A DNA stretch of 64,000 nt. It comes from Adineta vaga (taxonomy: Eukaryota > Animalia > Rotifera). Below are positions 41,864-64,000 of the stretch, in pieces. Within the stretch, counting starts at the first letter, position 1; each line of letters begins with the position of its first letter. The notes below the pieces were generated by a model. That model did not search any database. It had not been told where the DNA came from and saw only the letters and a list, made by a program, of their open reading frames with translations. The DNA lies in contig CP075494.1 of NCBI GenBank assembly GCA_021613535.1, positions 11,098,001-11,162,000 on the forward strand. Direction: 5' to 3'. The position numbers and the translations under genes are program-made.

Positions 41864-44800
41864 ATGAAAAGGATGAAATCCGAAGTACAAGAAATTCTTA
41901 CGACTACGAATAAATTCCATAAATCACGTAAGAAAGTAAAATTTCGTCATTTGAAGAAATGTTTTTAATTAACTTTCATAGGATCAAATGATATTATTCA
42001 AACGAATAATCATGATGACTCGTATGATTTAATCACTGATCATAATTTGATTGCTCCACATGAAATATGTCCTAGTGGTATTGGTCCACTTTCTATCCTC
42101 GTCAATCAACATATATCTGATGTATCGTTTTCAAAATTGTATCAAGCAAGGTAATTAGAGAAAGATTTCATATTTTCATGGATTTTTTGTTGTTGTTATT
42201 GGTTTTTATAGTTTAAAATTTGGATGGGAAAAGATATTTACTCAAGATCGACAAAAACTTAAACCTAATGATATATCAGTTTTGAAATGTATTGTTTTCA
42301 ACCGTCTATTACACGAGTATTTAGAAGTAAGATTAATTTAGTTCTCATAAAAAATAATCGGAGGTCGATATTATAAAAAAAAGAAGAAATAAAAATAGAA
42401 GGTCATATTTATTCGAAGTAGAACGTAACGCACTGAGGAAGGCCGTTCACCGATAAGGGTGCATTCGAGTGCAAATAGTGCCGTTTTGTTCTTTTTATTT
42501 TCATCAAATGATGATGTAATTCGACATACAATGAATGTACTTTGTTACCATTAACAATTGCAAATGGTTGTTTTTTTTTAAATACACTTTGAATCGTGTA
42601 TATTTTAGAACTCAGATGTTTTTGTTCAAAAAACGACAAATTTATATAATGAAATAAGAGCTCGAATGGTAACTGACTTCCCATCATGGGTAAGTAAATA
42701 ATAGTTTGTAAAAAAAGTTTTAATCCTAATTTTTAAAATAGACTTCACAAGATTTATTCAATGAAGTTCGTCGTTGGAGAGATGTTCAATGTAGACGACG
42801 TTTGTTTTATTTCAATCATGAGGAATTAATACAATTTCCAGGTTTACTTATGCTACAAAAAGCGTATGTATTGTTTTGGTTAGTTAGTCAAATCATATGG
42901 AATTAAATCTATAGATCAACAAATTGGTGCCATTGTTTAACGAATTATTATCGACAAAATAAAAATCTCTGGGAAACCGAAGGACGTCAACGATTTTCTG
43001 AACATTTGCAACAGTAAATTTTCTTTTTAAGCAAAACAACGATTGAAAACAAGCTTCAATCTTTATTTCTTTAGTTCATTTATTATTGTTGCTCAACCGA
43101 CTGGTGCAGAAGGTGCAGCTGTAACTCAATATATCAAAAGTACTTCCGGACATTTTGCTAGATTGAATACACGTATTATCTGTCTATTGGATCCTGTGAT
43201 TCTTCATAATTATATAGATCTTTCCGATATTGGTAAAGGATTTTCTTACAAAAGTTTTATGATCTCAATCAATCTTCTTCATAGATGTTATACTTTATCC
43301 ATTGAATCGAGAAATAAATGATAAGAAAGAAAAACAATCTTCAATTAAATGGGAAATACGTAAAGTAATGAGTGCTGAAGGTGCTACGATATCACTTTTC
43401 TGTGCTGAAATTCAAACACTTCAATTGGGAAAGAATGATTCGGAAAGTAAACGTCTGTCATTGAACTCAACACTCTGTCAATTAGAATTTCGATTTAAAG
43501 TCAAAGTAAATTTTTCAAATGACCAATTCATTACGAAGATTTTCAATTTTGAAATTAGGTCAAAGATTTTCATTTTGAAGAAAATATTCTTTTAATATCT
43601 CAACCATTTGGAATCTGTTCACATGCTCAATATTTTCCGAAATTTGTTTCACAAATCTTTCTCTACGAAATCAAACATATTTTAAATGATGTAACGATTT
43701 GATTCTCGTTCTATCTTTATTTTTCCTAAGACTTATTTCTAATTCTTTTCGTAGCAAAATCCTATAACTGATCCAAATATTCTTACTATATATGTTCGAC
43801 GATACTATACACGAATGACCGGTTTCGAAATAGCTGAACATACAAATCGATATATTCGAGATGTTTTCACACAAATTATTAATGGTAAGTCATTTACTTG
43901 AAATCATTCCATGTTTTAGATAGATTTCAAATATTTAGATACAAAAAGTACACGTTCTATTAGTACGCTAGATCATATACTTGAAGTAAGAGAAATATTC
44001 AGTTGATATTTGTTTTGTAAAATTTGATTATATTGATATTTAAAAGGATATATTGACGAAAATCATCAGTCAAATTGATTATCTCGTTTTACATCCCGTT
44101 TTATTATTAATGTATAATGATAAGTAAGATGAAATTCTATATATGTCAATTTTGTGATCTGATCTAATACTATTTTTCTAGTCTCTTTCTTGGCATATGT
44201 GATAGTCTTGCTTTTGATCGAAAGTTGAAGGGTAATCGTGAAAAACCTGATGTATTGTTACGTTTAAATACTCTTACGAAACATCAATGGAATAGTAATG
44301 CAAATGTTCGATTTCTAGTTCATGACGGTAGTGATAAAATATTTGATATTTTGTTCTTCTTAACAATTTAGAATAATGTAAAATGTAGGTAATTTAAGGC
44401 GAGCAAGTTTTGATTCGAAATCATTCGTAAATGAACTCTGTAGACTTATTTGTGAATCGGTTAATGTAAAAACAAAACAAGCAACTGTTTTATCTCCAAT
44501 ATCACTTCGTCAATTTACTGATTTTCATTGGTATTTTCGTAAGTAATTCTTCTTATTCTAATCTAGAAAATAATTGATGAAATTTTATTTAGATGATGAA
44601 TTGTATCGATTAAATAAAATGACACCATTAGATAGTGATGCTTATGATCCTTTATTACCGATTCTTTGGATGACAATGTAAAGATTATCATTTTTCGTCT
44701 CGAAATACTATCAACTTTCTCTCTCTCTCTCTTTCGTTTTAGGAGACGCAATGATGATCAACATACTTTAGAAAGAGATGGTGTCTTGCAAAGTACACTT

Positions 44801-45519
44801 CCACGGAAAAAACGAGCACGTTCTGATTCATTTCCAACAATCGAATCTGTTGTATCGGAATGCCAACCAATTCCTATTAATATTGTACTTCATATAAATA
44901 AAATCGATGAATCATCATCACAATCCACGAATTCTTCTACTAATTCTCACATTGGAAATTCTGGTAAGATAATCTAATTTCTTCTTTGAAAATAAAATAA
45001 AATAATATATATATATATATATCTTCAGTTACTGATAAACCATTGACAACTAATGAGAAAGTTCAACAAACGAATAATCCGGATGGTTCTAAAAAGCGTC
45101 GTCAATGGTTAATTGAAATGCCTGAAGATATCAATATATCTCCAGGAGTAATTTTTCAATATTTAAGTGAAAAATTTTTCCATATAATGAACAATCAAAA
45201 TGATAGTATATCTTCTTCCAGTTATTTACTTCGACCTGAACCATCCACATTATCAACGATAGATCTAAAGTATTTGCATAATTCCAAACGGATAACATCA
45301 CCTGTTGATGAATCATCAGATGATTCGAATTCTTCTGTAGAAGTAAGTAGTTTTAGTAATAAGATAACTAATAATACGGTTTTCTATTTCTATGTTTCAT
45401 AGCTAGCGAAAGCTGATTTAGATTCATCAAGTAATGATTCAGTAAAACGGATTAAAGTTAAAGATGAACCATGTGATGCTGATTATGAGACCATATCCGA
45501 CAGAATGACAATTCATTGA
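41864..45519 (+). CDS. Divergent STAT-like protein, array copy A
   Basis: EVRRWRDVQCRRRLF..LLMLQK (coiled coil); SFIIVAQP...TRIICLLDP and QPFGICSHAQYFPKFVSQIFLYEI (DBD); RYYTRMTGFEIAEHT (linker); LMYND.LFLGICD...VLLRLNT (SH2); SDAYDPLLP (post-SH2 Tyr); Ser-rich tail. Confidence 0.72.
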
Positions 45520-46868
45520 GATGATTTTTTTTAATATATTTTTATGGAAAACATTTTATTTTTAATTGAGAATCAAATCATCGTTCCAACGAACCTGAAA
45601 AGTCTTTTGTATTCATTTGTTTACTTTTATAGTTTATAAGTACTGTATTGTTCAAATTGAATTCTCTCATGTGCTTCTCTATTCAATTCATACTTGGTAA
45701 AAGAATATCTATTGATGTTCGATGATACCTAAATTACTGATTGAATATAGATTAGTCTATTCACTACGTTCAACTGAAGTAATAGATTGTGAGACAAACT
45801 TATAGTTAGCAAATGATTCTACCTGATCTCAGATGATTTATTTTGCTTGACACACGATCTTTCATCAGCTAAGTATTGACGTTGAAGAATCGTTACATTT
45901 AAAAGTTTTTGCTAAAATATTGTCTAGCCAAACCAAATAAATGTTTAACAATACGATCAGTATGTAATGAAAATTTTACGCGAGTTACTCATTGAACGAT
46001 GTAGTTATCATAAATAGAGAAGTGCAACGACGCTTCTATGGTAAGACAGCTGGTTTATAACTTGCCATGGTGAAGATTACATTTTCGGTTGTCAAGTTTT
46101 GAAGTTGATAATCATAATAAAAACAACCATTTTCATGACATAATTGTACGGTAAAATTTGCCTGAAGGACTTACTTTCGTTAATGAGAAAGCCACGCCGC
46201 TAGATTTAAAAAATCGCGGAAAGTTAACGTCTGTTTTTTTGTATTTGATAATATAAATTTGATTATTACTTACGATAACACGATGTCACTTGAAAACGAA
46301 AATATATGTCTGGAAGATAACAGTCGTACGTTACAGTTGATATTTTTTCATATTAATTACAACGATTAAGAGAATTGTCTATTGACGTCTTCAAGAGAAG
46401 GAATTTGTATGCTGTGACGAAAATCTATGAAAATAATTTCATTATGAAGAAATTCTTACGAAATTAAAAAAAAGTCTTCGAATTTACATGATTATGACAA
46501 AAAATAATGAATTTCGTTTGTTTTAGTTGTAAAATGTAATACTCATCCTTGACTTGGAGAGAAAGTCTTGCCAACTTACTTATCGTTGGTAAAAACCCTA
46601 GTTAAATAATAGCAAAATAAAATTTTTCGTGGAAAGGTAATCTTTCATGGTAACAACGGCTACGTCATTTTCGTGTTGTTTTATTCGTTGACAGAATAAC
46701 AAAAGAATGAAGCACCGCTGGTTTCTAATAGAATAGAAGACAAAATCATATTTAGCCAAGTTTTTAGTCACGTATTAAAAGCTTAGACAAGTGAATTATT
46801 ACGTGACACATTTTCAGTATAATTGAAATAAATTCTCATACAATAATCCAAGAGATTAATCATCCTAT

Positions 46869-49605
46869 ATGGCAACAAAGGATCATCATTTAACCAAACG
46901 ACCAAAGACAGGTGACATACATTTGTTCACTCTTAGTTATCTCTTATGTGTTTATAGAATCAACATTAATCAATCCTATCGATATCAACTATCACAATTT
47001 TCTATCCCCAAATGAGGCTTTCTCAAACATTGATATTTATCTTTTCTTCTTAATGAACGGTTCAATAGTGAAATCATCTTTTTCAGAGCTATGTCAAAGA
47101 AGGTTTGCAGAATTGAATTTTAGCTCAATTAAATTAGAACTAGTTTTGTAGTTTACAGGATGGATGGCTAACATTGCTTCGTAATGAACGAGACAAATTA
47201 AAATTAGATCCAAAATCCAAAATCAAACGTTTTATCCTGAATCGATTGCTCGCACAAGGTCCTGAAGTACGACTGATCAAAATAATTTTTGATGATAGTT
47301 TCTCTCTATTGTAATTTAGTTTTTTAATCAACAAGTCTATCAATTGATTGAACAAATCAATGATCATATGTCCAATACGATTCCTATTCATTGGAATAAT
47401 TATAGTGATCGACAAGTAGTAGAAAGTATCTACAGTGAAGTGAAGAACTATCGAATGTTACAAAATCAACAAGGTTTACTTCACGTCGAACGTGATCAAA
47501 TATGCAATTTATTTGTTTTACAAGAAGGGTTCGTTCTTACTTTTCCCTTTTTTTCTCTCGTTATATTTCAATACTAAATAGAATAACCAAGCGTTTTCTT
47601 GAACTGGTTAGTTCCTCATCGAATCATTCGAATGCAGAACAAACGGATGCAAATGTTATGTTTCAAGAGCTTTTTGATCAGTATGAATCTATGAATATAA
47701 ATAAGAAAAAACATTTATTCTGATGCTTTCTTTTTCCACTACGTAGTTCTCTGATTATTGTTGATCATCCATCTGGTCTTGAATGTCCAGCAGTGGTCAA
47801 ATATGAACTCAACGAGGAGAAATATGAGATAAAGATCAAGACGCGTCTTATCTGTTTACTTGATCCACAACAAGTCGGTCAATATTTGAAAATGTCCAAT
47901 ATAGGTAAGTTTGTCTTCTTTCGAAGTTTATAATATAATTGTTGAATTTCTTTTCGAAGAGGCTATACTTTATGCAAAAGATTCCGAAAACGATCCCAAT
48001 GAAAATATCAAACTTTCACTTTCATGGAAATTTGAAAAGATAATGGATACTGCCAATACGAGCAGAACTTTTCTTTACTGTGAATTAACTGAAGATTGTC
48101 CAATCACATTCGGTAAAAAACTAAACAAAAAGAAATTTTTCTACAGTCAAAGACTATGTTACCTGCAATTCAGCATTAAATTCCATGTATGACTAAACAT
48201 TACGGAATAATACATTATCATATATTCTTGCTTAGGTTCCGATTTTAACTATTGAAAAAACTTCAGTCGTTAATTCGCAGTTATTTGCTATTTGTTCGCA
48301 TCCACAATTATTTCCACAATATCTAGCAAAAGTTTTAATTATTGAAATGAATAATTCATCTTCAATTGTAAGCGAAATCTTCTGATATGAATAGATTTCT
48401 ACGGATTATTTCTCGTTCAGATAAATTATGAACAACATGTCGGAACACTTATGAATTATATTAATCTTTATCATCAACGTGTCTGTGGAATTAAACTCAA
48501 TGATGAAAGTCATCAATTCATAGTAAAACAATTAGAAAATGTCTACTTATCATCACATGAAAAGATATCGAGCCTTTCATTTGATATCTATGAAGTAGGC
48601 AGATATCGTTTATTGAAATTTCAAATTTTTCTTATGTTTTAAAGCATATCTTATCGAAATTAATCGCACAAATTCGATTTATGAGTAATCATCCTTTCCT
48701 TTGTACGATGTATCACGAAGGGTTTGATAAAGATTCTCTTGTCTGTATTATATATGTGTTCATATACTTTGTGTCTAGACTATTTCACGGAATATGTGAT
48801 GCGGCTATTGATCAAAATTTAAGGAATGGAACAAGAACGAAACCTTATATATTGATACGATTCGATACATTAGACAATCAAACGACTGCATGTAATCAAA
48901 ATCTAATTTTTGCTATTAATAACGGTTCGTATCAATAAAATTTTGTACACAATAAATGTAAAGTTTAATATAGGCGAGTTGTGTAAAGCAGAGATTGAGA
49001 GCCAAAATCTCGCTGAAGAACTATGTCAATGTTTTCATAAAGCAGCAAGTATTAAAAGTCAAGCACAGATGTACAATCATGAAATTCTTTCATTTGAAAA
49101 CCTACGTTTTTATTATGGTAAAATAAATGATGATATGTTTATTTCAAAATTCATACATAACGATTTCAATTTAGATGAAAAAATGCAAACTGTTAAGAAA
49201 ATCAATTACTATCCACTAAATCTACTTCTTCGCGATAAAATGTAGTTATAATTGAGATCCTATATTTTCTATTTATTTGTATATTTAAATTTTAGACAAC
49301 CCGTTGATACTAATCCACTACGTAAGTCTGCAAATTTCATATTCAAATTTCATTTCTCTTGTATAGCTGCAACAACAACTACTGTTCAAGATCTGTTTCC
49401 AATCAATTCAGAAGCACCAACACAATATAGTGCAATTCTATCATTGAATATAACTGCTAATAGAGATTTAAGACCCTACGTGATTACATATTTACAACAA
49501 GCTCTCTCACAATTATGTTCAGAAAATGATATTACTGGTGTTCTAGACTCTTTTTCGTCATTAGAACTTCTCGATCATATTAATCCGTCTGATTTTCGAA
49601 CGTGA
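46869..49605 (+). CDS. Divergent STAT-like protein, array copy B
   Basis: FILNRLL; SLIIVDHP...KTRLICLLDP; QLFAICSHPQLFPQYLAKVLIIEM; YHQRVCGIKL; HPFLCTMYHEGLFHGICD...YILIRFDT; KINYYPLNL. Confidence 0.72.
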
Positions 49606-50109
49606 ATTCGAATAAAAACATTAATCTAGAAATGAGATTTAAATCCAATTGTTTAATTTTTATTTGAGACAACTTTGTTAGTCATTTGACGCAAGTAAAC
49701 TTTTCTAAGTATGCGAATCTTTTCGATCATTTTTTTTTCTCTAAATTTTAGAGAATAGATTCATCTCTTTATCGTGATCTCAATATTAGCATCAATCACA
49801 TGACGGCTGAACGGAGGATAAAAGTTATGTGATAGAAATATTTTTTTGTTAGAAGGTTTGAGAATAAAAAATAATCAATGAATACTTTTATCTTAGAAGC
49901 GTATTTGATGTTAATATGACTATATTTACTCTTGTTTCTACGAAATAATTGAAAAAGAATGAAAAAGAAAAGAGAAAAAACTGAAAAAACGAATTCTTGT
50001 CTATTGCATTACACTCGAGGCTTTTTTTCTAAATGCGAAATGTGTGAAAACGTTTTCACATCAAGGACTTGACACGATTATTTCAATATTTTAGAATTTA
50101 TCGAAATAG

Positions 50110-52823
50110 ATGTTCATGTCACAAAAAGCAGGGTCAAACAAACGAAAAAAAGCAAGTAATAAACAACTATTCATTGTATTTTGGTGAATTGTATCTAAAA
50201 AGTACTATTCATGCCTATCTAGATGCATCCGAAATTCTTAGTCATATCAATTCACAAAGTTTATCGAACGATTTTGAATTTCTTACAGGACCAATTGATG
50301 TTCAGGATCCATTCCTATGGTTATTATTATCTGGTCGAATGATGAATAGTACAATTTGGAATCTATTTGAAAAGAGGTAACTAAAACCTCGAATAAAATA
50401 CGTTCAATATCAATTCTTTTAGTGATGAAATAAAACGAAAACAATTATTAATTGATGAACGAAATAAATTGAAGTTAGATGATAAATCCAAATCAAAACG
50501 ATTGATACTCAATCGATTAATTCATGCATGTTTAGAAGTATATCTTATTCAGAATTCATAGCATCAAAGATTTTCATATTGTTTCATTTCTTATAGAATT
50601 CGAACTGTTTACATCAACAAACTGAACAATTAATTCAATCGATCCGACATCAAATATCCGATCCATATCCATATGAATCAATATTTTATACTGATTTACA
50701 ATTATATGATGAAGTACAAGTATGGAGACGAACTCAATGTCGACGACGTTTGTTTTTCGAACAATTCTCTCCATCATGTAATTTACTTACATTACAACGA
50801 TTGTAAGTTCATTGAATTCCTTTCCTGTTATTCTCAATAGTGGATTATTCAATAGAATGACTGATCAATTTATTCATTTGATCAATCAATTTCATCAAAA
50901 TCCGAATACTTTTCAAGAAACGGATCAAAATGCTCTTATCAAATTGTTTGATCAGTATGTTTCTTTTTTTTTCATTTTCCTTCGATGTTTCTGATTGCTT
51001 GTATCTAGTTCATTGGTCATTGTCGTTCAACCATGTGGTACAGATTGTGTAGCAGCAACTAAATATGAAAAAGAAGCGAAAAATTTTGTTGCAAAATTAA
51101 AAACACGAATCATCTGTCTATTGGATCCCGTTCGAACTCATGGATATTTGACTCTATCAGATACGAGTAAATCGTTTGTTTTTTTTTCTCAAGATTTTAC
51201 TCTTCTTGTTTAGATGTGGTACTCCAAACTGAAAACGATGATCTCGATGGCGATCCTCAAGCATCTCTTACGTACAAAACACGAACAATAATGACTAATG
51301 AAAATATCGAAAGAACATTCAGTTATTTCGAAATGAAAGAAATTCAATGTTTGAAATTAACAAAATTAAATACGAATGGAAAACCTTCGTATAATAGAAA
51401 TTTATGTAAATTAAAATTTCAAACCCTATTTCAAGTAATAGTCAATGGATTTACTCTTCAAATTCCTATTCTCTTCCAATCACAATTATTTGGTTTATGT
51501 TCTCATGCCAAATATTATTCGAAATATTTAGCAAAAATATTCTTATCAGAAATCCATCAAATGCATCCAGATGTAAAGCATAGATTGAAAACATTCTTGA
51601 ACTTTTCTCTTTTCATATATAGATCGATCCGACATTTCATATCAATGTTTTGAAAACTTATATCTGTCAATTTCACAGACGTCTGACCGGTGTGGAAGTA
51701 AAACTACATACTGAAAATTATATAAAAGAAAACTTACAAGCGTTCTATCGAACATTTGAACAAAACGCCTCATCTCCAACGACTGATGTGATGTTTTTTT
51801 CGTGGAATATCTATGAAGTATGATTAATAGTTTTGGTCTATAACTGTTTTTTTTTCATTTATTAGGAGCGTTTAACAAAATTATTCAGTCAAATTCGATT
51901 CCTAAGCAATCAACCATGTCTAGCACTGATGTATCACGACAAGTTATTATTTAGAATTCTTCTTATCGTTATATTTTTGATCATTTAATCTATTTAGTCT
52001 TTGCCGTGGTATAACTAATGAAGCATATGATAAAGATCTCGAGAAAACGATCTCAACTGAAGCTGGAATATTGATACGATTTGAAGAATTTACTCATCAA
52101 GAACCAACAAGAAATCCTTATATTATTGTCGTAAAATTCAATGGTTTGTATCAAACGAATTCAATAACTATTGGCCTTCGTAATAATGCTATTTGTATAG
52201 GTACACTATCAATATCACGTATCAGTCATGAATATCTCCTCAATGATATCTGCAGATATTGTGAAAGAACAATAGAAAATTCTTTACACATATTCGCTGA
52301 TGATAAACTTCTACCTTTTTCAACATTTTGTCTATATTATGGTAACATTCTAGAATATCTTTCAAAAAAGAAAAGCGAAAACATCGTTACTTTACCTTAT
52401 TAGATGATGGATTAAATCGGAATAATTTCATTCAGTCTGATAATTACACGATATTTCATTTAACAAATGTTCTTATGCAAAACAACAGGTGAATCGAATA
52501 CGTTTATGATTCATTATTATTCTTTGATTTTTAGACAGGATGATTCAGAGCAATCTCAGACTAATCAGCAGAATATTTCACCGACATTTTATCTTTCCGG
52601 AAAATTAACTGGAAGAACAGATGCAATGAATGAAGCTATGACGGACCTGAAAGAATATTTTGCTACTCTGTGTAAAAAACATAACATTCACGGTACCTTA
52701 TTTCAAAGTGAGACAAAGCCATTCACGGATGTCATATGTAATACGAATGAACTTGATCTTTTAAGTAACTTTTTATTACCTGCAAGTGATGTTGATGATC
52801 TTCTTACTGAACATGATTACTAA
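50110..52823 (+). CDS. Divergent STAT-like protein, array copy C
   Basis: DEVQVWRRTQCRRRLF..LLTLQR; SLVIVVQP...KTRIICLLDP; QLFGLCSHAKYYSKYLAKIFLSEI; FHRRLTGVEV; LMYHD.LCRGIT...GILIRFEE; SDNYTIF. Confidence 0.72.
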
Positions 52824-53266
52824 GATTACATATAAAAAAATGATAAATACTAAAGAAAGAAAAACTATATTCAGTTGAATAGATCTATGCCTTAGTCCTT
52901 GAAAGATAGATGTCAACCTTTTGTGTTCCTCTAACCTCATACGACTCTCAAGGTACAGAGACAAGGTCGGTTAAATTACTTACTTTTTGTCCTTTGAGTG
53001 GAAATCATTTTTTTGATTCTTTTCTCCTCGTGAAGTCGCATAAAAGAAATATGTTCTTTTCCGCGAAAACTGTCTGACCTTAATCGGAAAAAAGAGAATT
53101 TCACTGAAATATTACAATATTTCTGCGTAACTCAAACTTTTTAATATAATGATTGTTTTATCTTCGTATACGGAGAAACGAATCTGTCCAAGAAAAAAGG
53201 AATTCAACTAAGTATTTAAACAATGCAGATCGAAGAAAGGTCATACCAGTAAAGTTAAAAGTCAAT

Positions 53267-56200
53267 ATGGCAACTGAAAAGAAATCTCCTAGACAAGGAA
53301 CAAAACGATCTGGTAAATTTGGCTTTTAAAACAAACGTTCATTTGTTAGAAATCATTTAGCATCCGATCCAACGATTGAACTAGCACAAATGCCTACTAC
53401 TATTAGTCATAAGTATCCAATATCATCGGATTTTTCGAATGATAAAGATTTACTTGTACCAAATGAAATTAGTAATCGAGCAATTGGTCTTCTCTCTTGT
53501 TTGACAACGAGACGACTAATTAATATATCTTTCACAACTTTATATCAACGAAGGTAAACAATATGATTGATATAGATGAATTGATCTTACTTAAAGTTTA
53601 GTTTAAAAATTACTTGGTTGGATTTATTAACGCGTGAACGACGAAATCTTAAATCAAATATTAATTCAGTAGAAAAATGTTTTATGATTAATCGATTGAT
53701 TGCAGAATGTACAAAAGTATGATTAAATCTTTAGTAATTTCTTCATAAGAATGCTTTCTTCTATGATTATAAAGGATCCGTATAAATTTGCACAACAAAC
53801 AGGAGAATTATTTGAAGAAATCAAATCGTCTATGTCGACAACATTCTTATCAACATGGGTAAATCAAATCAATATGAATAATCGAAATAATTTTATCTAA
53901 TTATACTTTTCTAGTCAGCAGAAGATTTCTATAATCAAATAATAATTTGGCGTCGTTTGCAATGTCAACGACGTTTATTTCATATTGATTATGATGAAAT
54001 TAATCGACCACAAAGTCTACTAACATTACAACGATTGTAAAATTTTTCAATATTAGTTCTTAATCATTCGTTAAACTTCCTAAATTTAGTGTTAGTGTAC
54101 TTACCAATCAATATCTTAACTCCTATCGAGTCAATCCAACGATAGATAATCAAAATCATTTGAAAAAATTATTGCAACAGTAAGAAATCTTTTTCTTATA
54201 TAATCATTCTAATCTCTCTGAATTATAGTTCGTTTCTTATTGTTGCTCAACCATCTATTCCAGAATGTGTTGCTGCAACAAAATATGAAAAAACAAAGGA
54301 TAATTATGTTGCGAAATTATCTTCGCGAATCATCTGTTTAATAGATCCAGATACAATTGAAAAATATTTCGTTCTTGATAGTATTAGTAAGTTTCTCAAT
54401 AGAATTATCGATGAAAATTTCATTTTTCTATTAAAGATGTGATTCTTTATCCATTCGATCGAACTGTGGATTCATTCGGCGAAAGGCAATCTGCATTAAA
54501 ATGGTATACAAAACCAATAACAGATGTTGAAAATCAAATTAGAATGGTTCTCTTCGCCGAACTTGACTCGATTTCCTTACAAAAATTAGATATTCGAAAT
54601 ACTCGACCATTATATAGTGCTAAACTATGTCAATTACAATTTCAAATAAAAGTCAAAGTAAACTACACTTTTCTTCAGAATATTGTTTTTTGTTCTAAAT
54701 CGATTTTCAATAGACAAAAGAATTTCATATCGAAGAGAATTTACTTTATCTTTCACAACCATTTGGACTTTGTTCACATGCTCAATATTATCCAGAATAT
54801 GTTGCAAAAGTACTTCTATATGAAGTTTCATTACTAACACAAACTGTATGTTATCTGTTTGAAATTTTCAAATGAAATTCATAAGAATATTTCAGATTGA
54901 TCTAATGATACATCCAGATGTTCTTACAGATTATCTTGCTCGATATCATGTTCGAATAGCAGGTGTTAAAATGAAACGTCATACATGTGAATATATCAGA
55001 AATATTCTACGAATAATTTATGGTAAGAATAGTTAGAATACTAAGAGTTTAACTAGTATGAGAGTATTCGTTTAGAAGGACGAAAAGATGTACTAATGAC
55101 GGCTGCTTTTGGAATCTATGAAGTAAGTTTGATGGTATTGTTTCTTCATATTTGAAATTGTTCTCTGTTCATAGGAAATCTTAGCTCAGATGATTAGTCA
55201 AATGGAAATGTTTATAGATCATCCATTTCTCGCTATGATGTATCATGATGGGTATTGAAAATTTTTCTTTATCGAAATATTTCATCTTAAACTAACGTGC
55301 TTCATTTTAGTTTATTTCTCGGTATTTGTAATAGTGCACTCGATCAAAATCTTCATGGTACTCGTGAAGAACCACATATTTTACTTCGTTTTAATACGTT
55401 ATCGACGCATCAATCAATTCAACATGCATCTGTTCGATTTATTGTTCATAATGGTTAGAATTTCTCGGAGAAAGTCAATGTTTATTTTGATATTTTCTAG
55501 GTCAATTGATACGAGCGACTTTTCATGCAAAAGCCTTCATCGATGAAATGTGTCGAATGATTGCTGAAGCCAATTCGGAGAAAGCAAAAAAAATTCGATT
55601 ACTTTCCGATACATCGAATCAAACATTCTACGATTTTATTTCATATTTTGGTAAGTCTGAAAGTATGTAATGACTTGTATATATTTTTTTCTATCATTCA
55701 TCTCAGATAATGAATTATTTCGACTTGATACAGCAGCAGCACCTATGAAAGATGCCTATCAACCATTCATACCGATCCTTTGGAATACAATGTAAGTCGA
55801 TGAATCCATTTGATATCTACTATTATATTTATTGTTTAGGAGAACAAATACTGATCTATCAGAACAACAGATACGTATGTTAAAATGTCACATTTCTATC
55901 AATTTAAATGTTTAGTATTTTATTCTAATTTAGCTTCTCCTCTATTCGTTGTGAAAACTCATCCAATAGATTTATCTCAAACTGGTGCATCTTCCATGCA
56001 AGGTAAGATATTCGTAGCTATGTTTTCGTATGAAACTATTTGCTCCGTTTAGTTGATACTCCTCATGTAATGGAAACTCATTCTCAATTGCCACGAACAA
56101 CTGAAAAGATAACTTCACAAATTGATTCAATTATTTTTCGTGTATTCGAAAAACTCGTTGATTTATTGACGAAATCTACTTCGCCATATTCGACTCAAGC

Positions 56201-56392
56201 ATCGACATTTCTTTCAAGTTTAGTCGAGACTAATATCACTCAACAAAAAGAACTTATAACGCAGGCTATATCAGAATGTTTACAATCACCAGATTTTATG
56301 GAAATGTCTACACAGGTAAGAAGCAATATCTTGACTTATATTTATAATTTATCGTGATTTTCTAGACATCATCAGATATTTCATCGACTAGT
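53267..56392 (+). CDS. Divergent STAT-like protein, array copy D
   Basis: IIIWRRLQCQRRLF..LLTLQR; SFLIVAQPSIP...SRIICLIDP; KLCQLQF; QPFGLCSHAQYYPEYVAKVLLYEV; YHVRIAGVKM; HPFLAMMYHDGLFLGICN...HILLRFNT; AAAPMKDAYQPFIP. Confidence 0.75.
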
Positions 56393-57366
56393 ATTTCAGC
56401 TGATACTTAAATCAAAGCTTTTGTGTGACATTTAAAAATTTATACTTTTAATTATAAATAATATTTGTCGAATTATTTAAAATAAATCAAGTATTATGAT
56501 CATATGGATATTTTTCTTTTAAATCTTTATTCATCATATGTAATCAGAAAACAAAAGATAAATATTGATCGATGTTCTTTATCCTTTGAAAGCATTTTAG
56601 TATCTTTATGATTTCTTTATCGAACGGTTGAAATATATCTTTAAAAACCCTATAAATTATATTATTGTCTACAGTTGGAATTTTCTAACTTTTGTAAATT
56701 TCAAATTCTGTGAATGTTGAATGTGAGAAATTTCCAGTTGACCTAATGACGTATTCAATAGGTTTTCAGTCGCGGAATAGCAAGCCAGACAAGGTAATAT
56801 TGACATTGACAAGTAGAGAAAAAGAACAGAAGCAACCATTTTTTAATAATTTACTCTTTCGTTACCATCCAAAACATCAGGTTTCTTTTTTTCTTATGAG
56901 TCATCGACATATTTTCTCGTCGTCAGATGATATCTATTTATATAAATCATGGATTCTGGATACAATAAATACTCGAGAATCAAACGAGTACAAATACATT
57001 CTTAACTTGCCTATGAACATGGGAGTAAAACAATGTTTAGATCACAACTACAATCAATAGTTGATGAATAATATAATCAATTTTTGCTACTCCATTTCGA
57101 CATGTACCGAGTTTTTTTCATGTTCGATGTAAGCAGAAAGACAAGAAATTCGCAACCAGGTGAGTATTTTTATTACATTTTTTTTGCATTATTCTTAATC
57201 TCTTTAGCAGTCTTTGTAGAGATCAAATCGTGCGAATTGATCAAAGATTATTTTCTAAATGTATTAGTATTATTCACGTTTGCTTTTATTTTGTGAGTTC
57301 AAGAATATCTTTGTATAAGATTGTTGCTGTTTTAGATCGTTTTTATTTCTTGTCTTATCATTGATA

Positions 57367-60300
57367 ATGGCAAAACGAAAATCAGGAAGTTCACGAACAC
57401 TATCAAACTGTAAGCATTGTTTTGTCGGTTGTATAATCCCTTCAATTTCTTGTGCTTCTTTTAGCACCAAAAGAATTTCCATTGGTAAGTTTTTCTCATT
57501 GAAAATATCCCAAATGATCTTTCTCACAAACAAACTATTTCAGACTGTTCGAACTGGTCTTTTTGAATGTTATGCATTTCTTGCACCAAATGAATATAGT
57601 GAAAAAACATTCGGTTTACTTGCTTTTCTTGTTCGAAGTTCTGTTGGTGAAATAAACTTTTCATCAATTATGGATAAAGTTCAACAAAAAATTCAAGAAA
57701 AACCCAAAGAAATACGATCGGTTCCGAATGATTTAAGTAGAGCAAACGATTATATACAATTGTTAGAAAAAGAACGAACGAATCTTCCAGAAATTAATGC
57801 TTCAATTGAAAAATGTTGGATGTTAAATCGGTTAATTTCATATATAAATGAAGTAAGAACGAATCTCTTTTTGATTTTTGAATAGCGATTTAAAATATAT
57901 TCTGTAGAACAATGCAGAATTTCTTTCGATTGTCGATCATATTCGCGAAGATATGAGATTGAAGATGATCGATGGAACAGAAAATCAAATAATCAATTAT
58001 CCAAATGTAAATTTAATTTCATTGATTGATTGATGAGTTTGCATAGAAAAATTTTCTTTTCATAGGATTTTCGACAACGCGAAATCGATTTTGATCATCG
58101 AAGAAATGCTCAGGAAATGCGCCGTCTATTTTATCTTAGTCATAAAGAAGCAAGAGAACCACCCAGTTTAATTCATTTACAAAATAGGTAAGTCTTCTCG
58201 TCGATAATATAATCTACATGAAAGATTGATGATTTGTGTTGATAATTTAGGGTAACACAACATCTGGATTATTTGCTTCAGGCAAGAAAGCAATACGTTT
58301 CGACATTTTCACACAATGGTCGCGAAGAACTTTTGAAAATAATTGACAAGTAATATTGTTCTTTCGCTTTATGGAAATCAACATTATTCTAATTAGTTCA
58401 TTTATGATTACTGTACATCCTTGTAATGGTGATATTCCAGTGATAATCTATAAACCTATAAGGTCTCAATATGTAGCTAAAATCAACATGACAATTGTCT
58501 CGTTATTGCATGATTTTATGAGGAAGTATCCAGATATGATCGAGCTTCAAGATATCAGTATGTAAATCATTATTTAGTACAGCTCTATCTGATGAAAGTA
58601 ACTATTTAGAATTCAAATTAGTACCAGAAGAGAAAAGTTATAGACTTCAATCGTCTGAACCGATGATCTGGCAGACTTGTGAACTACAAGGACATCCAAG
58701 TGGTCGATCGCCACGAATGTATTTTTCTGAATTATCCTCAATCTGTGTTGTTCAATCACATAAAGATGCGGCAGGAGTTGAATTCGCTCAAAAATTACAT
58801 GCAATTGAACTTACTGTTCAGCTAAAAGTTAGTACGGTAATAGATTAATATTCAATGAATATTTATTTGATTATAGATAAATATTAAAGAATTTAATATT
58901 TCAACAACTCGTTTGATCACATTTACTTCTTTAAAATTTGCTATTGCTCAACGTACCTCTCAAATTCCACGATTATTAGCAACTGTAGTTTTGAACGATA
59001 TTCAAAAATATTTAAATGTTCGAATAATATTATTCGAGAAATTATATTATAAATTTGATCTATCTTACTTAGAGTTCAACACCTGCCGTTCAAAATCTTA
59101 TTGGTTTTCTGTCACGTTATTTTATGCATCGAACAGGTGTGTTTTATAATCGTTCTCTTCTAAATTTTCTTCAAAAGGAATTAAATCAAGCCCAAGGTAA
59201 TTGAATTATACATTCAACTTCATTATCAAGTATACCTCTGTATTTTAGTGGAAAGAGCAAATTTTAAAACGATCGAAGAATGTTTTATGGTATGTATTGT
59301 TGTTCCACTAAAAACTTCTATGTTAAATGTGTGTTTTTGTTTTTAAAGGATTTTCTTACATCATTTGTGCATCAAGTAGAGTTTATGGCTCGTCATCCAG
59401 TTCTTTGTATGTTCTATACGACTAAGTAAATAGTTTTTCTCTCCCAATCATATCAATCTACTTTCTTAAACATTATTCATAGATTATTTCTTGGCATCTG
59501 TGATAGTGAACAAGTGGCATTAAGTTTAAAAGCATTATCAATTGACCATTTTGTAATAACTGCTTTTCGTTTGAATACAATCAGAATTGATTACAAATCT
59601 ATTGCTAACAAATCAATCGTTGGCAGAGTTATTCAACCTTCGGCATGTGCTTTCCGATTGGATATTTTCAATCGTATGTTACAAAGACAAAGAATGTTTT
59701 CTATATATTTTTCTACGAATAATTTCGAATCATTTAGATAGAAATAGCTGTATGGAAAATTTCACACTCGATATTGATAAGATGATACAAGAATTAAATA
59801 AGCTCATATATACGAGTAATGACGAGAAAGCAACTAAAATACAACTTTTTAAGAGTATTAATCAAACTAATGGACAAGCAGAATTTGAATCTTTCGATAA
59901 ATATCGAAAATATTATGGTATGTATCATATTTATATTCGTAAGTAAAATAATCATTAGAATATTTCAATTAGATTCACGATTAAAAAAAATATGTGTTGT
60001 TCAGGAGGAATATCAACCTCTGATAAATCTTATAAGAACGTAAGTGTAGAGAATCTCAATAATTATATGCATATTGCATGATTATAAAATAGTGCTAATC
60101 TATTGAGCAATAACGATCCACACAATGATATGAATGTTCCAAATGACAATACAAATAATTCAGGTAAAATCAAGAAAATATTTAAATTCTAATATATGTG
60201 TTTTGTTTAATTACAGGCATTTCAGCTTTCTGTTCAACCATCAGTTCCCAACGAGTAGAAAACTTTAAAAATAATTTCGATCAAAATAAAGATCTTATTC

Positions 60301-60929
60301 TTTTTCAGAATCATCCTGAAAATCATGTATCAACGCCTTCATACATTGACAACTCCAATGGAACAGTATCGCCACAAAGTATCTTATCATCCGACCAAGC
60401 ATCATATCAAAAGATCCTTGAATATGTACTCTCAAATGTAAAACTATGCACAGAAATCCAAGAAAAATTAAACACATCACCTCCAATGTCAACGACAGCA
60501 TCCGAATCACTAAATCAACGTCAATCATTCGATGTTTTTGATCAGTATTCACCAGAAGAAACACAAATTTCTTCTCAGAATCTTTTAACACAAGCACAAC
60601 CATTTCATGAATTTCCTTCATTATTATTATCACATGAGATCGAAAGACAATCAATACATCAAACTGAAAATTCACATCAACAACAAGAACAAATCTTTAC
60701 GACTAATCTATCTGAACCAGAACAAGATCATTGTATTGATATATTCGAACAAAACGCAGATGCTTTTACGTTTCAATTACCTGAAGATATTCAGGACTAC
60801 CTAATGAATTCAATAGGAGAGGTAAAGGTCAATCATTTTTTCCCATGGAAATACCCTTTTAAATACAATCTACGTCATCATTCTTTCGAACTTTAGGTAT
60901 CAGAAGACACATTAAATCAATATGTGTAA
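57367..60929 (+). CDS. Divergent STAT-like protein, array copy E (a possible extra upstream exon near 57102-57160)
   Basis: EKCWMLNRLI; EMRRLFYL..LIHLQN; SFMITVHP; QKLHAIELTV...TSLKFAIAQRTSQIPRLLATVVLNDI; HRTGV; HPVLCMFY..LFLGICD...TAFRLNT; EEYQPLI; long Q/S/E-rich tail. Confidence 0.72.
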
Positions 60930-62036
60930 TGTGACTCAATACGTGAATCATTGTGTGTATAATCTTCGACATATAAACTGTACATTGGCTAAATGATGAT
61001 TATTTAATAAAAGATTTTTGATTGTTTTTCTTATAAAGAAAAATTCAAATGGTTCATTTTTTAAAGTTGGTTTTTTTTTAAATAAATAAATTCTTTTTTT
61101 TAATGTGTTTTGAAAGCAAAGAAAAATGTGAAGTTATGAGTCGTTTTTAATAAGTTGAATAGTCAGTGTCATACTCCATCTTTCCGAGAAAGTCGACCGT
61201 CTACGCAATATTGACTGTATGAGTTTTAAAATGCGATGCGCCTATATTTTATTGTTTTTTTCTTTGTTCGTTCTTCCGAAGAAAAAGAAAGAAAGTTTTT
61301 ACCATGCAGCCTTCTGTTTTATTTGCCTTCTTCTATTTATCGAGTCATTTAACAAAGCAAAAAAAAGAAGAAAATTTCGCATACAAAAATTGAAACGTTC
61401 GCAAAAAATTTATTTGAAAAAGAAAAATTTTCATCGACACATGTTAATACATACGCCAGGAACTATAATGTTTTACTTCCGAGACACGTAACACAATTGA
61501 TTGAAATTTCGTGAATCAAGTAAGATGGAAAAGAAAACAGAAATTTGCAATTTCAGTAGACCATTGATTATGTAGATAGAAATTCAATGATGTGTATAAT
61601 CATTATCAATATTCTCAATGTATTATGTCGAAATTATATTGCTACTATTATCTAAAAATGTTGTTAACAAAAAGAAATTCATTATACTACTTTTGTATGT
61701 GATATGACTCATGATTATTCATTATAATAGAAATTGTATGGATTTAAGTTGAATATGTTAACACTTTGGTAGTTATTAAACTATGATTTAAAATGAAATC
61801 TTGTTCATAGATTTGATTATGTAATGATATTCTGATAACTTACTATTTCGTCATGTTTATCTCGGAATAATGAACAGCACAGAAAAAAACCATCTTTGAA
61901 ATTATTCAGACTACGCCATCAAGTTTCTTACTGTTTTATATGTGTATAATATGTATGTATTATAAGTGTCAGAGTGCTTTGATTCTTTTAATTGAGTATC
62001 TTTCGGCTGTAGCTTTATGTACACATATCATAATTC

Positions 62037-62080
62037 TTCGACGAACCATCCATTCGGAGAAAAATCGTCTATTCGGCGAA
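62037..62080. promoter_or_regulatory. Cluster of three GAS-like palindromes (TTC-N3-GAA) upstream of STAT-like copy F
   Basis: TTCGACGAA 62037-62045, TTCGGAGAA 62053-62061, TTCGGCGAA 62072-62080. Confidence 0.5.
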
Positions 62081-62483
62081 GGTTTTTCAAGGCCTTGTTT
62101 TTCTTTTCGTTGGTTTCTTTCGTATATAATTCTTTAACCTTTATTTCAATAGTGAAATAGATGACATGAATCAAAGAAAATATGATTCTGGATTTTCGTT
62201 TCTAATTCCAAAAACGTTTTTGGCAAATTTAGATGAATTATGATCAATTACAATTCTTTCTATTCTGAATGTATACTCATTTCGAGAGAGAAAATGTAAG
62301 CGAATATCTGCTATAAGTAAGAATATTTTACTTTTTATATTACAAAAGGTTATGTAGATGTCAATGAATCAAATATTACTCAATTTCTAAATAAATGTGT
62401 ATAATGAACTTTTAACTGAATTTCAAAATTATATACAGAGGACTTTTACCTATTAGATTTGATCTATTTTCAGATTAGTAATT

Positions 62484-64000
62484 ATGTTCCCAAGTAAATC
62501 GAAAAACAAACGATTAGCAGCACGATGTAAGTTTTGATCTTGATAACGATGATTGATCTATTGAATTTCTACATAGCACCCTCACCATCATCATATACAT
62601 TCACATTAGTAAGTATGGTTAAAATTATGGAACGAAGAGATTCATTTAAAAAGCGCTATTCTAGACTCATCGAAGTGGCCTTTTCGAATGTTATCAGTTT
62701 CTTTCGCCGAATGAATATTCCGAAAAAACATTCGGTTTGCTTGCTTTTCTTGTTCGAAGTTCTGTTGGTGAAATCAATTTTTCACCAATCATGGATGAAG
62801 TAGAAAAACGTAATCAATCAGGGTAAAAATATTGATATTCATTTGAATGTATTTTTCTAATTTACATCGTGTTTATAATTAAGATCATTAATTGATTATG
62901 TCAAAGTCTTAGAAGAGAAACGAACAGGTCTACCAATCAATGAAGCATCTATTGAAAAGTGTTTAATGTTAAATCGATTGATTTCTTGTATAAAACAAGT
63001 CAGTTGTTTTCTTTTACCATTGAATTCTGTACATCAAATTTCTTTGTCATAGAATATTGCTGAAATACTTACGCTTTTCTCCGATATTCGTCTCGATATG
63101 AAACTTAAATTAGTAGATCAGCTAATCAATCAAACAATCAATTATCCAAATGTAAATTTCATTTCATTGATTAATTGATGAATTTGCATAGGAAACTCTT
63201 GTTTTCATAGGATTTTCGACGACGTGAACTCGATTTTAATCATCGAAGAAATGCTCAGGACATGCGCCGTCTATTTTATCTTAGTCATAAAGAAGCAAAA
63301 GAACCACCCAGTTTCATTCATTTACAAAATAGGTAAGTCTTCTCGTCGATAATATAATCTACATGAAAGATTGATGATTTCTGTTGATAATTTAGAGTAA
63401 CAGAACATCTAAGTTATCTAATTGATGATAAAATGCGATATGATTCCAAGTTTCGTGATACTGGTATTAAAGAATTAACAAATATAATGAGCAAGTAATC
63501 ATTCTCTTTTCGATAATAACAGTTTCGATAGCAAACTTACTTTCAGTTCCTTTATGATTGTTACACAACCACATTTTGGTATTAATCCTGTCATTATATA
63601 TGATCGAAAAGCAGGAAATACTGAATATACAGCAAAAGTATCAGTAACAATTTTTTCATTGTTACATGATTTCATGCAAACACATCCGAATACAATCGAA
63701 TTATACGATATCGGTAAAGAATTTCGATCGTAATTCTTTATCTATTTGTTTTTATTTGATTATTTATAGAAATGAGTTTATGGCCATCATCACCACTTTA
63801 TAAACTTGATGAATCTCAAACACTTTCATGGAAAACTTGTCAAATTCAAATATCATCAGATGATCGACCACGAATGATTCAATATGCTGAATTATCTTTT
63901 ATAACAATCATACCAGCAAATAAAAATAATCCTCGTATGCATTTTAGTGATGCATTACATTCATTAAAATTCGCTATTAAAGTTCATGTAAGATTCTTAT
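62484..64000 (+). CDS. Divergent STAT-like protein, array copy F (truncated by the window end; closest to copy E)
   Basis: PNEYSEKTFGLLAFLVRSSVGEINF, EKCLMLNRLI, DMRRLFYLSHKEAKEPP, SFMIVTQP, FSLLHDFM, DALHSLKFAIKV; exon structure similar to E. Confidence 0.7.

Follow-up and report, generated by a model that had tools for sequence, protein, structure and literature searches.

The stretch of DNA analyzed here, referred to as the window, comprises 64,000 nucleotides of the chromosome-scale contig 5 of the bdelloid rotifer Adineta vaga (CP075494.1, bases 11,098,001-11,162,000), is about 30% G+C, and belongs to a genome of 100.8 Mb on six contigs. Positions 41873-64000 are filled by six intact, intron-rich paralogues on the plus strand, copies A to F, with products of 673-883 amino acids. 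The best explanation for this array is that its genes specify STAT-superfamily proteins that have diverged strongly, a reading that we consider probable. Unless another contig is named, coordinates are window positions on the plus strand. BLASTP comparison of the open frames on this strand between 41.9 and 66 kb finds ordered exon-to-exon matches among copies A, B, C and D (27-60% identity per exon, E down to 1e-19), matches between copies E and F of up to 85% identity per exon (E to 1e-27), and several blocks that cross-match the A-D and E/F groups (E 1e-4 to 1e-6). In an exon-by-exon hmmsearch with a family profile, all six copies give collinear hits over profile positions of about 23-595; for copies C and D the match is partly built in. 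These ordered and collinear matches bear out the first-pass annotation of this DNA, which had described six same-strand, intron-rich paralogues with nearly the same starts. Its count of "at least six" can be narrowed to exactly six at this locus, as no seventh copy occurs in the 48 kb downstream of the array, and two further members lie on contig 2.

Gene models were built with a dynamic-programming script that scores codon log-odds and GT..AG introns, and they were then corrected against orthologues and by eye. Each of the six models is open from ATG to stop with zero internal stops, and the introns are GT..AG and mostly 45-70 bases long. Four intron positions are common to all six copies in the same phase and about eight more occur in most copies, which agrees with the shared intron positions claimed previously. 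Pairwise identity between the copies is only 18-42%. The expectation that the exons splice into continuous open reading frames is supported for copy D, where the model is identical to the NCBI protein I4U23_025503 (P0026) over all 733 residues and where spliced RNA is available. The RNA evidence is a 340-nucleotide contig of run X10 that joins three introns, all GT..AG, at 55651-55706, 55792-55839 and 55875-55933, with small exons between them (contig junctions 55649/55706, with the cut at +1, 55791/55840 and 55874/55934).

The type I genes occupy the 5' part of the array. Copy A (41873-45402; 17 exons, 794 amino acids) is a dynamic-programming model supported by collinear profile hits, with an SH2-type arginine codon at 44261-44263 and a tail tyrosine (AYDP) at 44643-44645. 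A putative exon of copy A at 42438-42536 proved spurious when set against the A. ricciae orthologue (P0048) and was dropped. The intron at 42327-42608 is unusually long for this gene, at 282 bases where its neighbors have 45-70. Copy B (46869-49605; 13 exons, 673 amino acids) combines a dynamic-programming model with first exons solved by hand (46869-46911, 46958-47103 and 47159 onward); it matches the family profile over positions 36-594 and has its SH2-type arginine at 48858-48860 and its tail tyrosine (YYPL) at 49207-49209. Copy C (50116-52823; 12 exons, 702 amino acids) combines a dynamic-programming model with the database protein P0001, which is 97% identical to the query exon of this copy and corrected its 3' exons. 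It is without three introns that are present in other copies, and its SH2-type arginine is encoded at 52077-52079. In P0001 the in-frame stretch 51437-51622, which codes for the conserved SQLFGLCSH block of the DNA-binding-like domain, is spliced out; P0001 is either misannotated or an alternative isoform without the block. Copy D (53267-56410; 19 exons, 733 amino acids) completes the group.

Copies E and F constitute type II. Copy E (57367-60896; 17 exons, about 883 amino acids) is a dynamic-programming model in which the donor after 59017 is uncertain. Its hits to the type I profile are weak but collinear, and it is 42% identical to copy F. The SH2-type arginine of copy E is at 59568-59570, its tail tyrosine (EYQP) at 60011-60013, and a long C-terminal exon rich in Q, S and N at 60217-60896. 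Copy F (62484-65951; 19 exons, 824 amino acids) was modeled on the window plus downstream DNA and has profile hits of its own. It extends 1,951 bases beyond the window end at 64000, and both its arginine and its Tyr-Lys-Pro motif fall in that downstream part. The collinear exon-wise profile hits, shared introns and common motif blocks that link the two types suggest that copies E and F are STAT-like through homology to copies A-D.

The conserved blocks of the family are SF.IV.QP, SQ.FG.CSH, Y..R..G, LF.GI...R and Y.P. The distance from the LF.GI element to (L/I/F)R(F/L/M) is 20-22 residues, and the arginine of the latter never varies among the six copies and 23 relatives. In copy D this residue is Arg497 (ILLRF, 55387-55389), a candidate phosphotyrosine-binding arginine that we infer to be equivalent to the STAT SH2 arginine on strand beta-B. 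The copy D arrangement Y.DG.F.GI-19-LLRF presumably has the same spacing as W.EG.I.GF, 19 residues and LLRF in STAT3, a correspondence that we treat as a lead only. A candidate phosphorylation site, Tyr586 (AYQP, 55757-55759), occurs 89 residues past Arg497. Y-x-P is found 89-90 residues downstream of the arginine in copies A, B and D and 108 residues downstream in copies E and F, and it is kept in these five of the six copies as well as in D-like and A-like orthologues. The exception is copy C, whose tail motif NYTIFHL (within 52404-52488) has phenylalanine in place of tyrosine; the ordered motif blocks of the first-pass annotation are otherwise present and conserved. Phenylalanine recurs at the aligned position in most of the lineage of copy C, including A. 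vaga, A. steineri and several Rotaria species (orthologues P0004 and P0050-P0053 compared), so that this lineage could be a non-phosphorylatable STAT-like branch. One of its members, P0004, may keep the tyrosine. The C-termini of the family are variable and often acidic or rich in Q, N and S, with long Q/N/S-rich tails in copies E and F.

An AlphaFold2 model of copy D, made from an alignment of 17 relatives, has a predicted template-modeling score (pTM) of 0.67 and a predicted local distance difference test score (pLDDT) of 85-95 over residues 40-430. The model begins with a helical bundle (residues 40-216, exons 2-6), which is followed by a beta-sandwich that resembles a DNA-binding domain (residues 219-363, 54229-54845), a helical linker (residues 366-470) and, at low confidence, an SH2-like part with the topology strand-helix-three strands-helix (residues 473-542, 55311-55650). 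A disordered tail and terminal helices complete the protein after residue 542. There is no STAT N-terminal domain: about 40 disordered residues precede the bundle in the model, and the corresponding profile (PF02865) has no hit in a six-frame search of the genome. This domain is also missing from Dictyostelium and some nematode STATs, and it does not define the superfamily.

Structural comparison of this model points specifically to STATs. In a Foldseek search of the PDB, all 45 chains with E <= 0.001 are STAT1, 2, 3, 5a or 6 or Dictyostelium STATa; the best match has E 8.2e-11, the alignments span 480-585 columns, and the first non-STAT chain appears at E 1e-3. VIA-align places STAT6 first (Z 15.9, root-mean-square deviation [rmsd] 4.2, 332 residues) and gives Z of 10.3-15.9 for 33 STAT entries, pairing model residues of about 135-595 with STAT residues of about 130-665. 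The next families in this comparison, velvet and TonEBP, reach Z <= 6.7 and match the beta-sandwich only. An exhaustive VIA-align run over 48,161 representative chains, independent of Foldseek, finds Z >= 8 for four chains, all of them STATs (15.5 to 10.5). A shape search of the ESM Atlas returns the family's own rotifer cluster first and then STAT4 and STAT5A clusters, with template-modeling (TM) scores of 0.45-0.50 over 400-460 residues, and it also matches a STAT5B DNA-binding fragment (TM 0.67, rmsd 3.0, 146 residues). A language-model feature search, which is free of structure, agrees: after the rotifer cluster, each named cluster shown is a STAT, with a best score of 0.90-0.92. A feature search of the Atlas that started from the SH2-like exon of copy E yielded nothing usable.

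At the level of the predicted structure, these comparisons establish that type I proteins (copies A-D) have the STAT fold, with its domains in STAT order. The proposal that the STAT domains follow one another in the expected order therefore gains a strong and specific structural match, while Pfam and PDB profile searches fail to recover it and the SH2 part is modeled with low confidence. It is very likely that the family is a STAT-superfamily homologue with a DNA-binding role. SH2 function of the SH2-like domain is plausible, and continued regulation by SH2-phosphotyrosine dimerization is somewhat favored.

The closest known counterparts are the canonical STATs, such as human STAT1-6 (1yvl, 1bf5, 4y5u, 9big), which share the bundle, beta-sandwich, linker, SH2-like part, tail tyrosine and C-terminal tail and align with Z 13-16 and rmsd 3.4-4.2 over 330-355 residues. 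The rotifer family differs from them in its lack of Pfam-level similarity, its 10-15% identity in structural alignments, the absence of the N-terminal STAT_int domain, its eight paralogues per haploid genome, and the absence of a JAK signal in a genome search that is weak. Dictyostelium STATa (1uur, 1uus) likewise has no metazoan N-domain, Dictyostelium is without JAK, and the alignment covers model residues 125-598 (Z 10.5-10.8, 333-346 residues). However, its match is weaker than those of animal STATs, with rmsd 5.6-6.2 and 9-10% identity, so the rotifer family appears closer to animal STATs. A cluster of divergent STAT-like proteins in the Atlas, with Nematoda as its commonest phylum, represents another protostome lineage whose members have come close to escaping profile searches (feature score 0.91, 208 of 256 features in common). 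The likeness is one of features, and STAT Pfam domains (STAT_linker, STAT_bind or SH2) are carried by 14-19% of the cluster members but by none of the bdelloid proteins. Velvet, TonEBP/NFAT, NF-kB, RBPJ and Runt proteins share the beta-sandwich at residues of about 212-366 (Z 5-6.7), but they match in this one domain only, at background Z, and have no bundle, linker or SH2 context.

Sequence searches delimit the family without naming it. The long exon of copy C recovers only 21 proteins when phmmer is run exhaustively over 1.84 billion representatives, and two word-indexed searches recover 18 and 38 proteins, nearly all from Adineta or Rotaria and none with a function name or Pfam domain. On this evidence the family appears to be confined to bdelloids and unannotated. 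A 6,524-amino acid protein (P0007) scores 60 bits against the copy C exon with no single matched stretch listed; it probably results from the fusion of a family member with other sequence in one gene model. None of the nine copy C exons that were translated has a Pfam STAT or SH2 match. Six-frame searches of the whole genome with STAT_bind (PF02864), STAT_alpha (PF01017), STAT_linker (PF21354) and STAT_int (PF02865) give no real hit at a sensitivity that is uncalibrated for STAT domains, and because their controls were prokaryote genomes, absence is not thereby demonstrated. The same six-frame method finds 65 SH2 matches in the genome and so does work on exons. The Pfam STAT profiles are detectors and not the definition of the STAT superfamily.

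Several results nevertheless weigh against a STAT assignment or against an active STAT pathway. Pfam searches of six database relatives, five of them near full length, produce only chance hits below threshold and no STAT_bind, STAT_alpha, STAT_linker or SH2. A PDB hmmsearch (177,635 sequences, E <= 10) with profiles of single exons from the six copies, of the full length (17 sequences) and of the SH2-like region (23 sequences) returns no STAT and just two chance rows with E > 1. The structural alignments show 9-15% identity to STATs. STAT structures were part of the AlphaFold2 training data, and the program worked from an alignment of only 17 rows. The SH2-like part has a pLDDT of about 45-55 in the full model, and when this region is folded alone (pLDDT 48.6) it has no Foldseek match at E <= 0.001; Cbl-TKB, Grb2, PLC-gamma and STAT SH2 domains are frequent among its weak rows, no more than a hint. 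Copy C lacks the tail tyrosine. An exon-wise six-frame genome search of uncertain sensitivity, with prokaryote genomes as controls, finds no hit for Jak1_Phl and only sub-threshold matches for JAK SH2_1 (<=23.3 bits against a cut-off of 27). Finally, expression is probably low under the conditions of the RNA data, since three of four presumed RNA runs have nothing on positions 50000-55999 and the fourth gives one short contig.

The alternative that best survives these results is that the proteins derive from STATs and have lost phosphotyrosine signaling. The SH2-like domain would then be a structural remnant, and the proteins would have a DNA-binding or scaffold role that is constitutive or responds to another input. 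The low confidence of the SH2-like region, which is the least confidently modeled part and has neither an SH2 profile match nor a significant match to a solved SH2 domain, is what this alternative would predict, as are the lack of a JAK signal in the genome and the phenylalanine at the tail of copy C orthologues from several species. The conservation of the two candidate functional residues speaks against it. The arginine of the LLRF element is invariant in about 25 sequences despite overall identity as low as about 20%, and Y-x-P is kept at similar spacing in both deeply split types. In addition, the STAT alignments continue through the SH2 region to model residue ~595, the genome has at least 60 SH2-encoding exons, and JAK-free use of STATs is familiar from C. 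elegans and Dictyostelium. We consider a loss of signaling unlikely on balance.

It is very improbable that the array belongs to an unrelated, bdelloid-specific family on which AlphaFold2 imposed a memorized STAT fold, or which converged on that fold. Such an origin would account for the absence of significant sequence or profile similarity to any STAT and could exploit the shallow 17-row alignment, but it leaves unexplained why four domains appear in the right order at pLDDT 85-95, why three different aligners show a clean gap between STATs and non-STATs, why an independent language-model feature search also yields STAT clusters, and why motif order and spacing agree with the STAT motifs given in the first-pass annotation. 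Decay of the array into pseudogenes of one functional gene is scarcely credible, because the 18-42% identity between copies, the very small amount of RNA and the very long branch of copy B are outweighed by six of six models that run uninterrupted from ATG to stop over 12-19 exons, by orthologues of every lineage in other genera with the same motifs, and by the retention of intron positions and phases.

If the genes do encode divergent STATs that still signal, their products would be latent transcription factors. A tyrosine kinase, perhaps not a JAK, would phosphorylate the tail tyrosine, and the invariant SH2-like arginine of a partner molecule would bind this phosphotyrosine in a reciprocal dimerization. 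Homodimers or heterodimers formed among up to eight paralogues could then bind DNA through the beta-sandwich, and the variable C-terminal tail would activate transcription. Copy C, without the tyrosine, could act in unphosphorylated form or as a modulator. Should the absence of JAK hold, the activating kinase would be of another kind; STATs operate without JAK in nematodes (C. elegans) and Dictyostelium.

Searched with the family profile, the whole genome yields this array and a single further locus, on the minus strand of contig 2 at about 7.092-7.102 Mb. This second locus (C2:7084001-7114000), which was also compared by tblastn with the spliced gene models, contains one D-like gene and one F-like gene about 5 kb apart. 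The D-like gene is I4U23_007962 (P0023), which encodes 748 amino acids and has the tail motif TYKP. A septin gene in the window has a 92%-identical partner at C2:7128218-7128814, 27 kb from the contig 2 family locus and in matching orientation. This syntenic septin pair indicates that the array and the contig 2 locus are ohnologous, that is, duplicates from the ancient bdelloid genome duplication. The window's innexin gene, whose best hit on contig 2 is 39-42% identical, lacks a close syntenic partner there. Two ancient types of the family, A-D and E/F, were already adjacent before the genome duplication. Copy D is 44% identical to its contig 2 counterpart compared with 92% for the septin pair, which indicates that the family evolves much faster than this neighbor, even if septins change slowly in general, and fits the rapid evolution claimed by the first-pass annotation.

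A maximum-likelihood tree of 33 sequences, among them the spliced models of A, B, C, E and F, contains three starred clades, consisting of A, of B plus C, and of D with the contig 2 copy, and each of them includes both Adineta and Rotaria proteins. Copy B has the longest branch. The mixture of genera within every clade indicates that the duplications predate the split between Adineta and Rotaria: the A, B/C and D lineages are older than that split, and the array is old rather than a recent A. vaga expansion. In this respect the expansion proposed in the first-pass annotation needs qualifying. The eight genes fall into two ancient types and five or more lineages, none of which Pfam recognizes. 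Copies E and F have a common 764-nucleotide tract (57535-58265 in E and 62656-63410 in F) that is 76.6% identical across exons and introns, with the remainder of the genes far more diverged. Partial gene conversion, a mosaic history or a younger 5' part could each produce this pattern.

Other genes surround the array. Upstream of it, window positions 596-40502 contain genes of ordinary animal kinds, for a polyprenyl synthetase, IFT52, a rhodopsin-type receptor and an alpha-amylase in addition to the innexin and septin. About 40 kb downstream, at C5:11201503-11202608, an SH3-then-SH2 gene encodes an adaptor or the N-terminus of a kinase. It has the SH2 match nearest to the array.

The proteins of this family are public yet unnamed, appearing as "hypothetical protein", and literature searches found no publication on STATs in rotifers. 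They are a very divergent variant of STATs and not a new kind of system. The family may be the sole STAT complement of bdelloids, although this is less likely than not. A fuller version of this idea, in which bdelloids are without a canonical STAT or JAK and the eight cryptic genes are the whole complement, driven by a non-JAK kinase, forming combinatorial and rapidly diversifying dimers, and provided with a built-in modulator in the C lineage, is rather doubtful at present. Pathogen pressure or the demands of recovery from desiccation and DNA damage could drive the diversification.

STATs are central signal-to-transcription switches of animals, and their evolution has usually been described from taxa in which they are easily recognized. 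Here a whole animal class has an eight-gene STAT-like family in which standard annotation recognizes no domain, and a Pfam-based survey would count bdelloids as animals without STATs. Structure-based re-annotation can recover signaling components of this kind in fast-evolving genomes. If the family is indeed the bdelloid STAT complement, then it would constitute a natural experiment on the extent to which the STAT core can change and still keep its fold, as well as another likely case of STATs that operate without JAK, and its members would be candidate regulators of the pathogen escape, desiccation tolerance and radiation tolerance of these animals.

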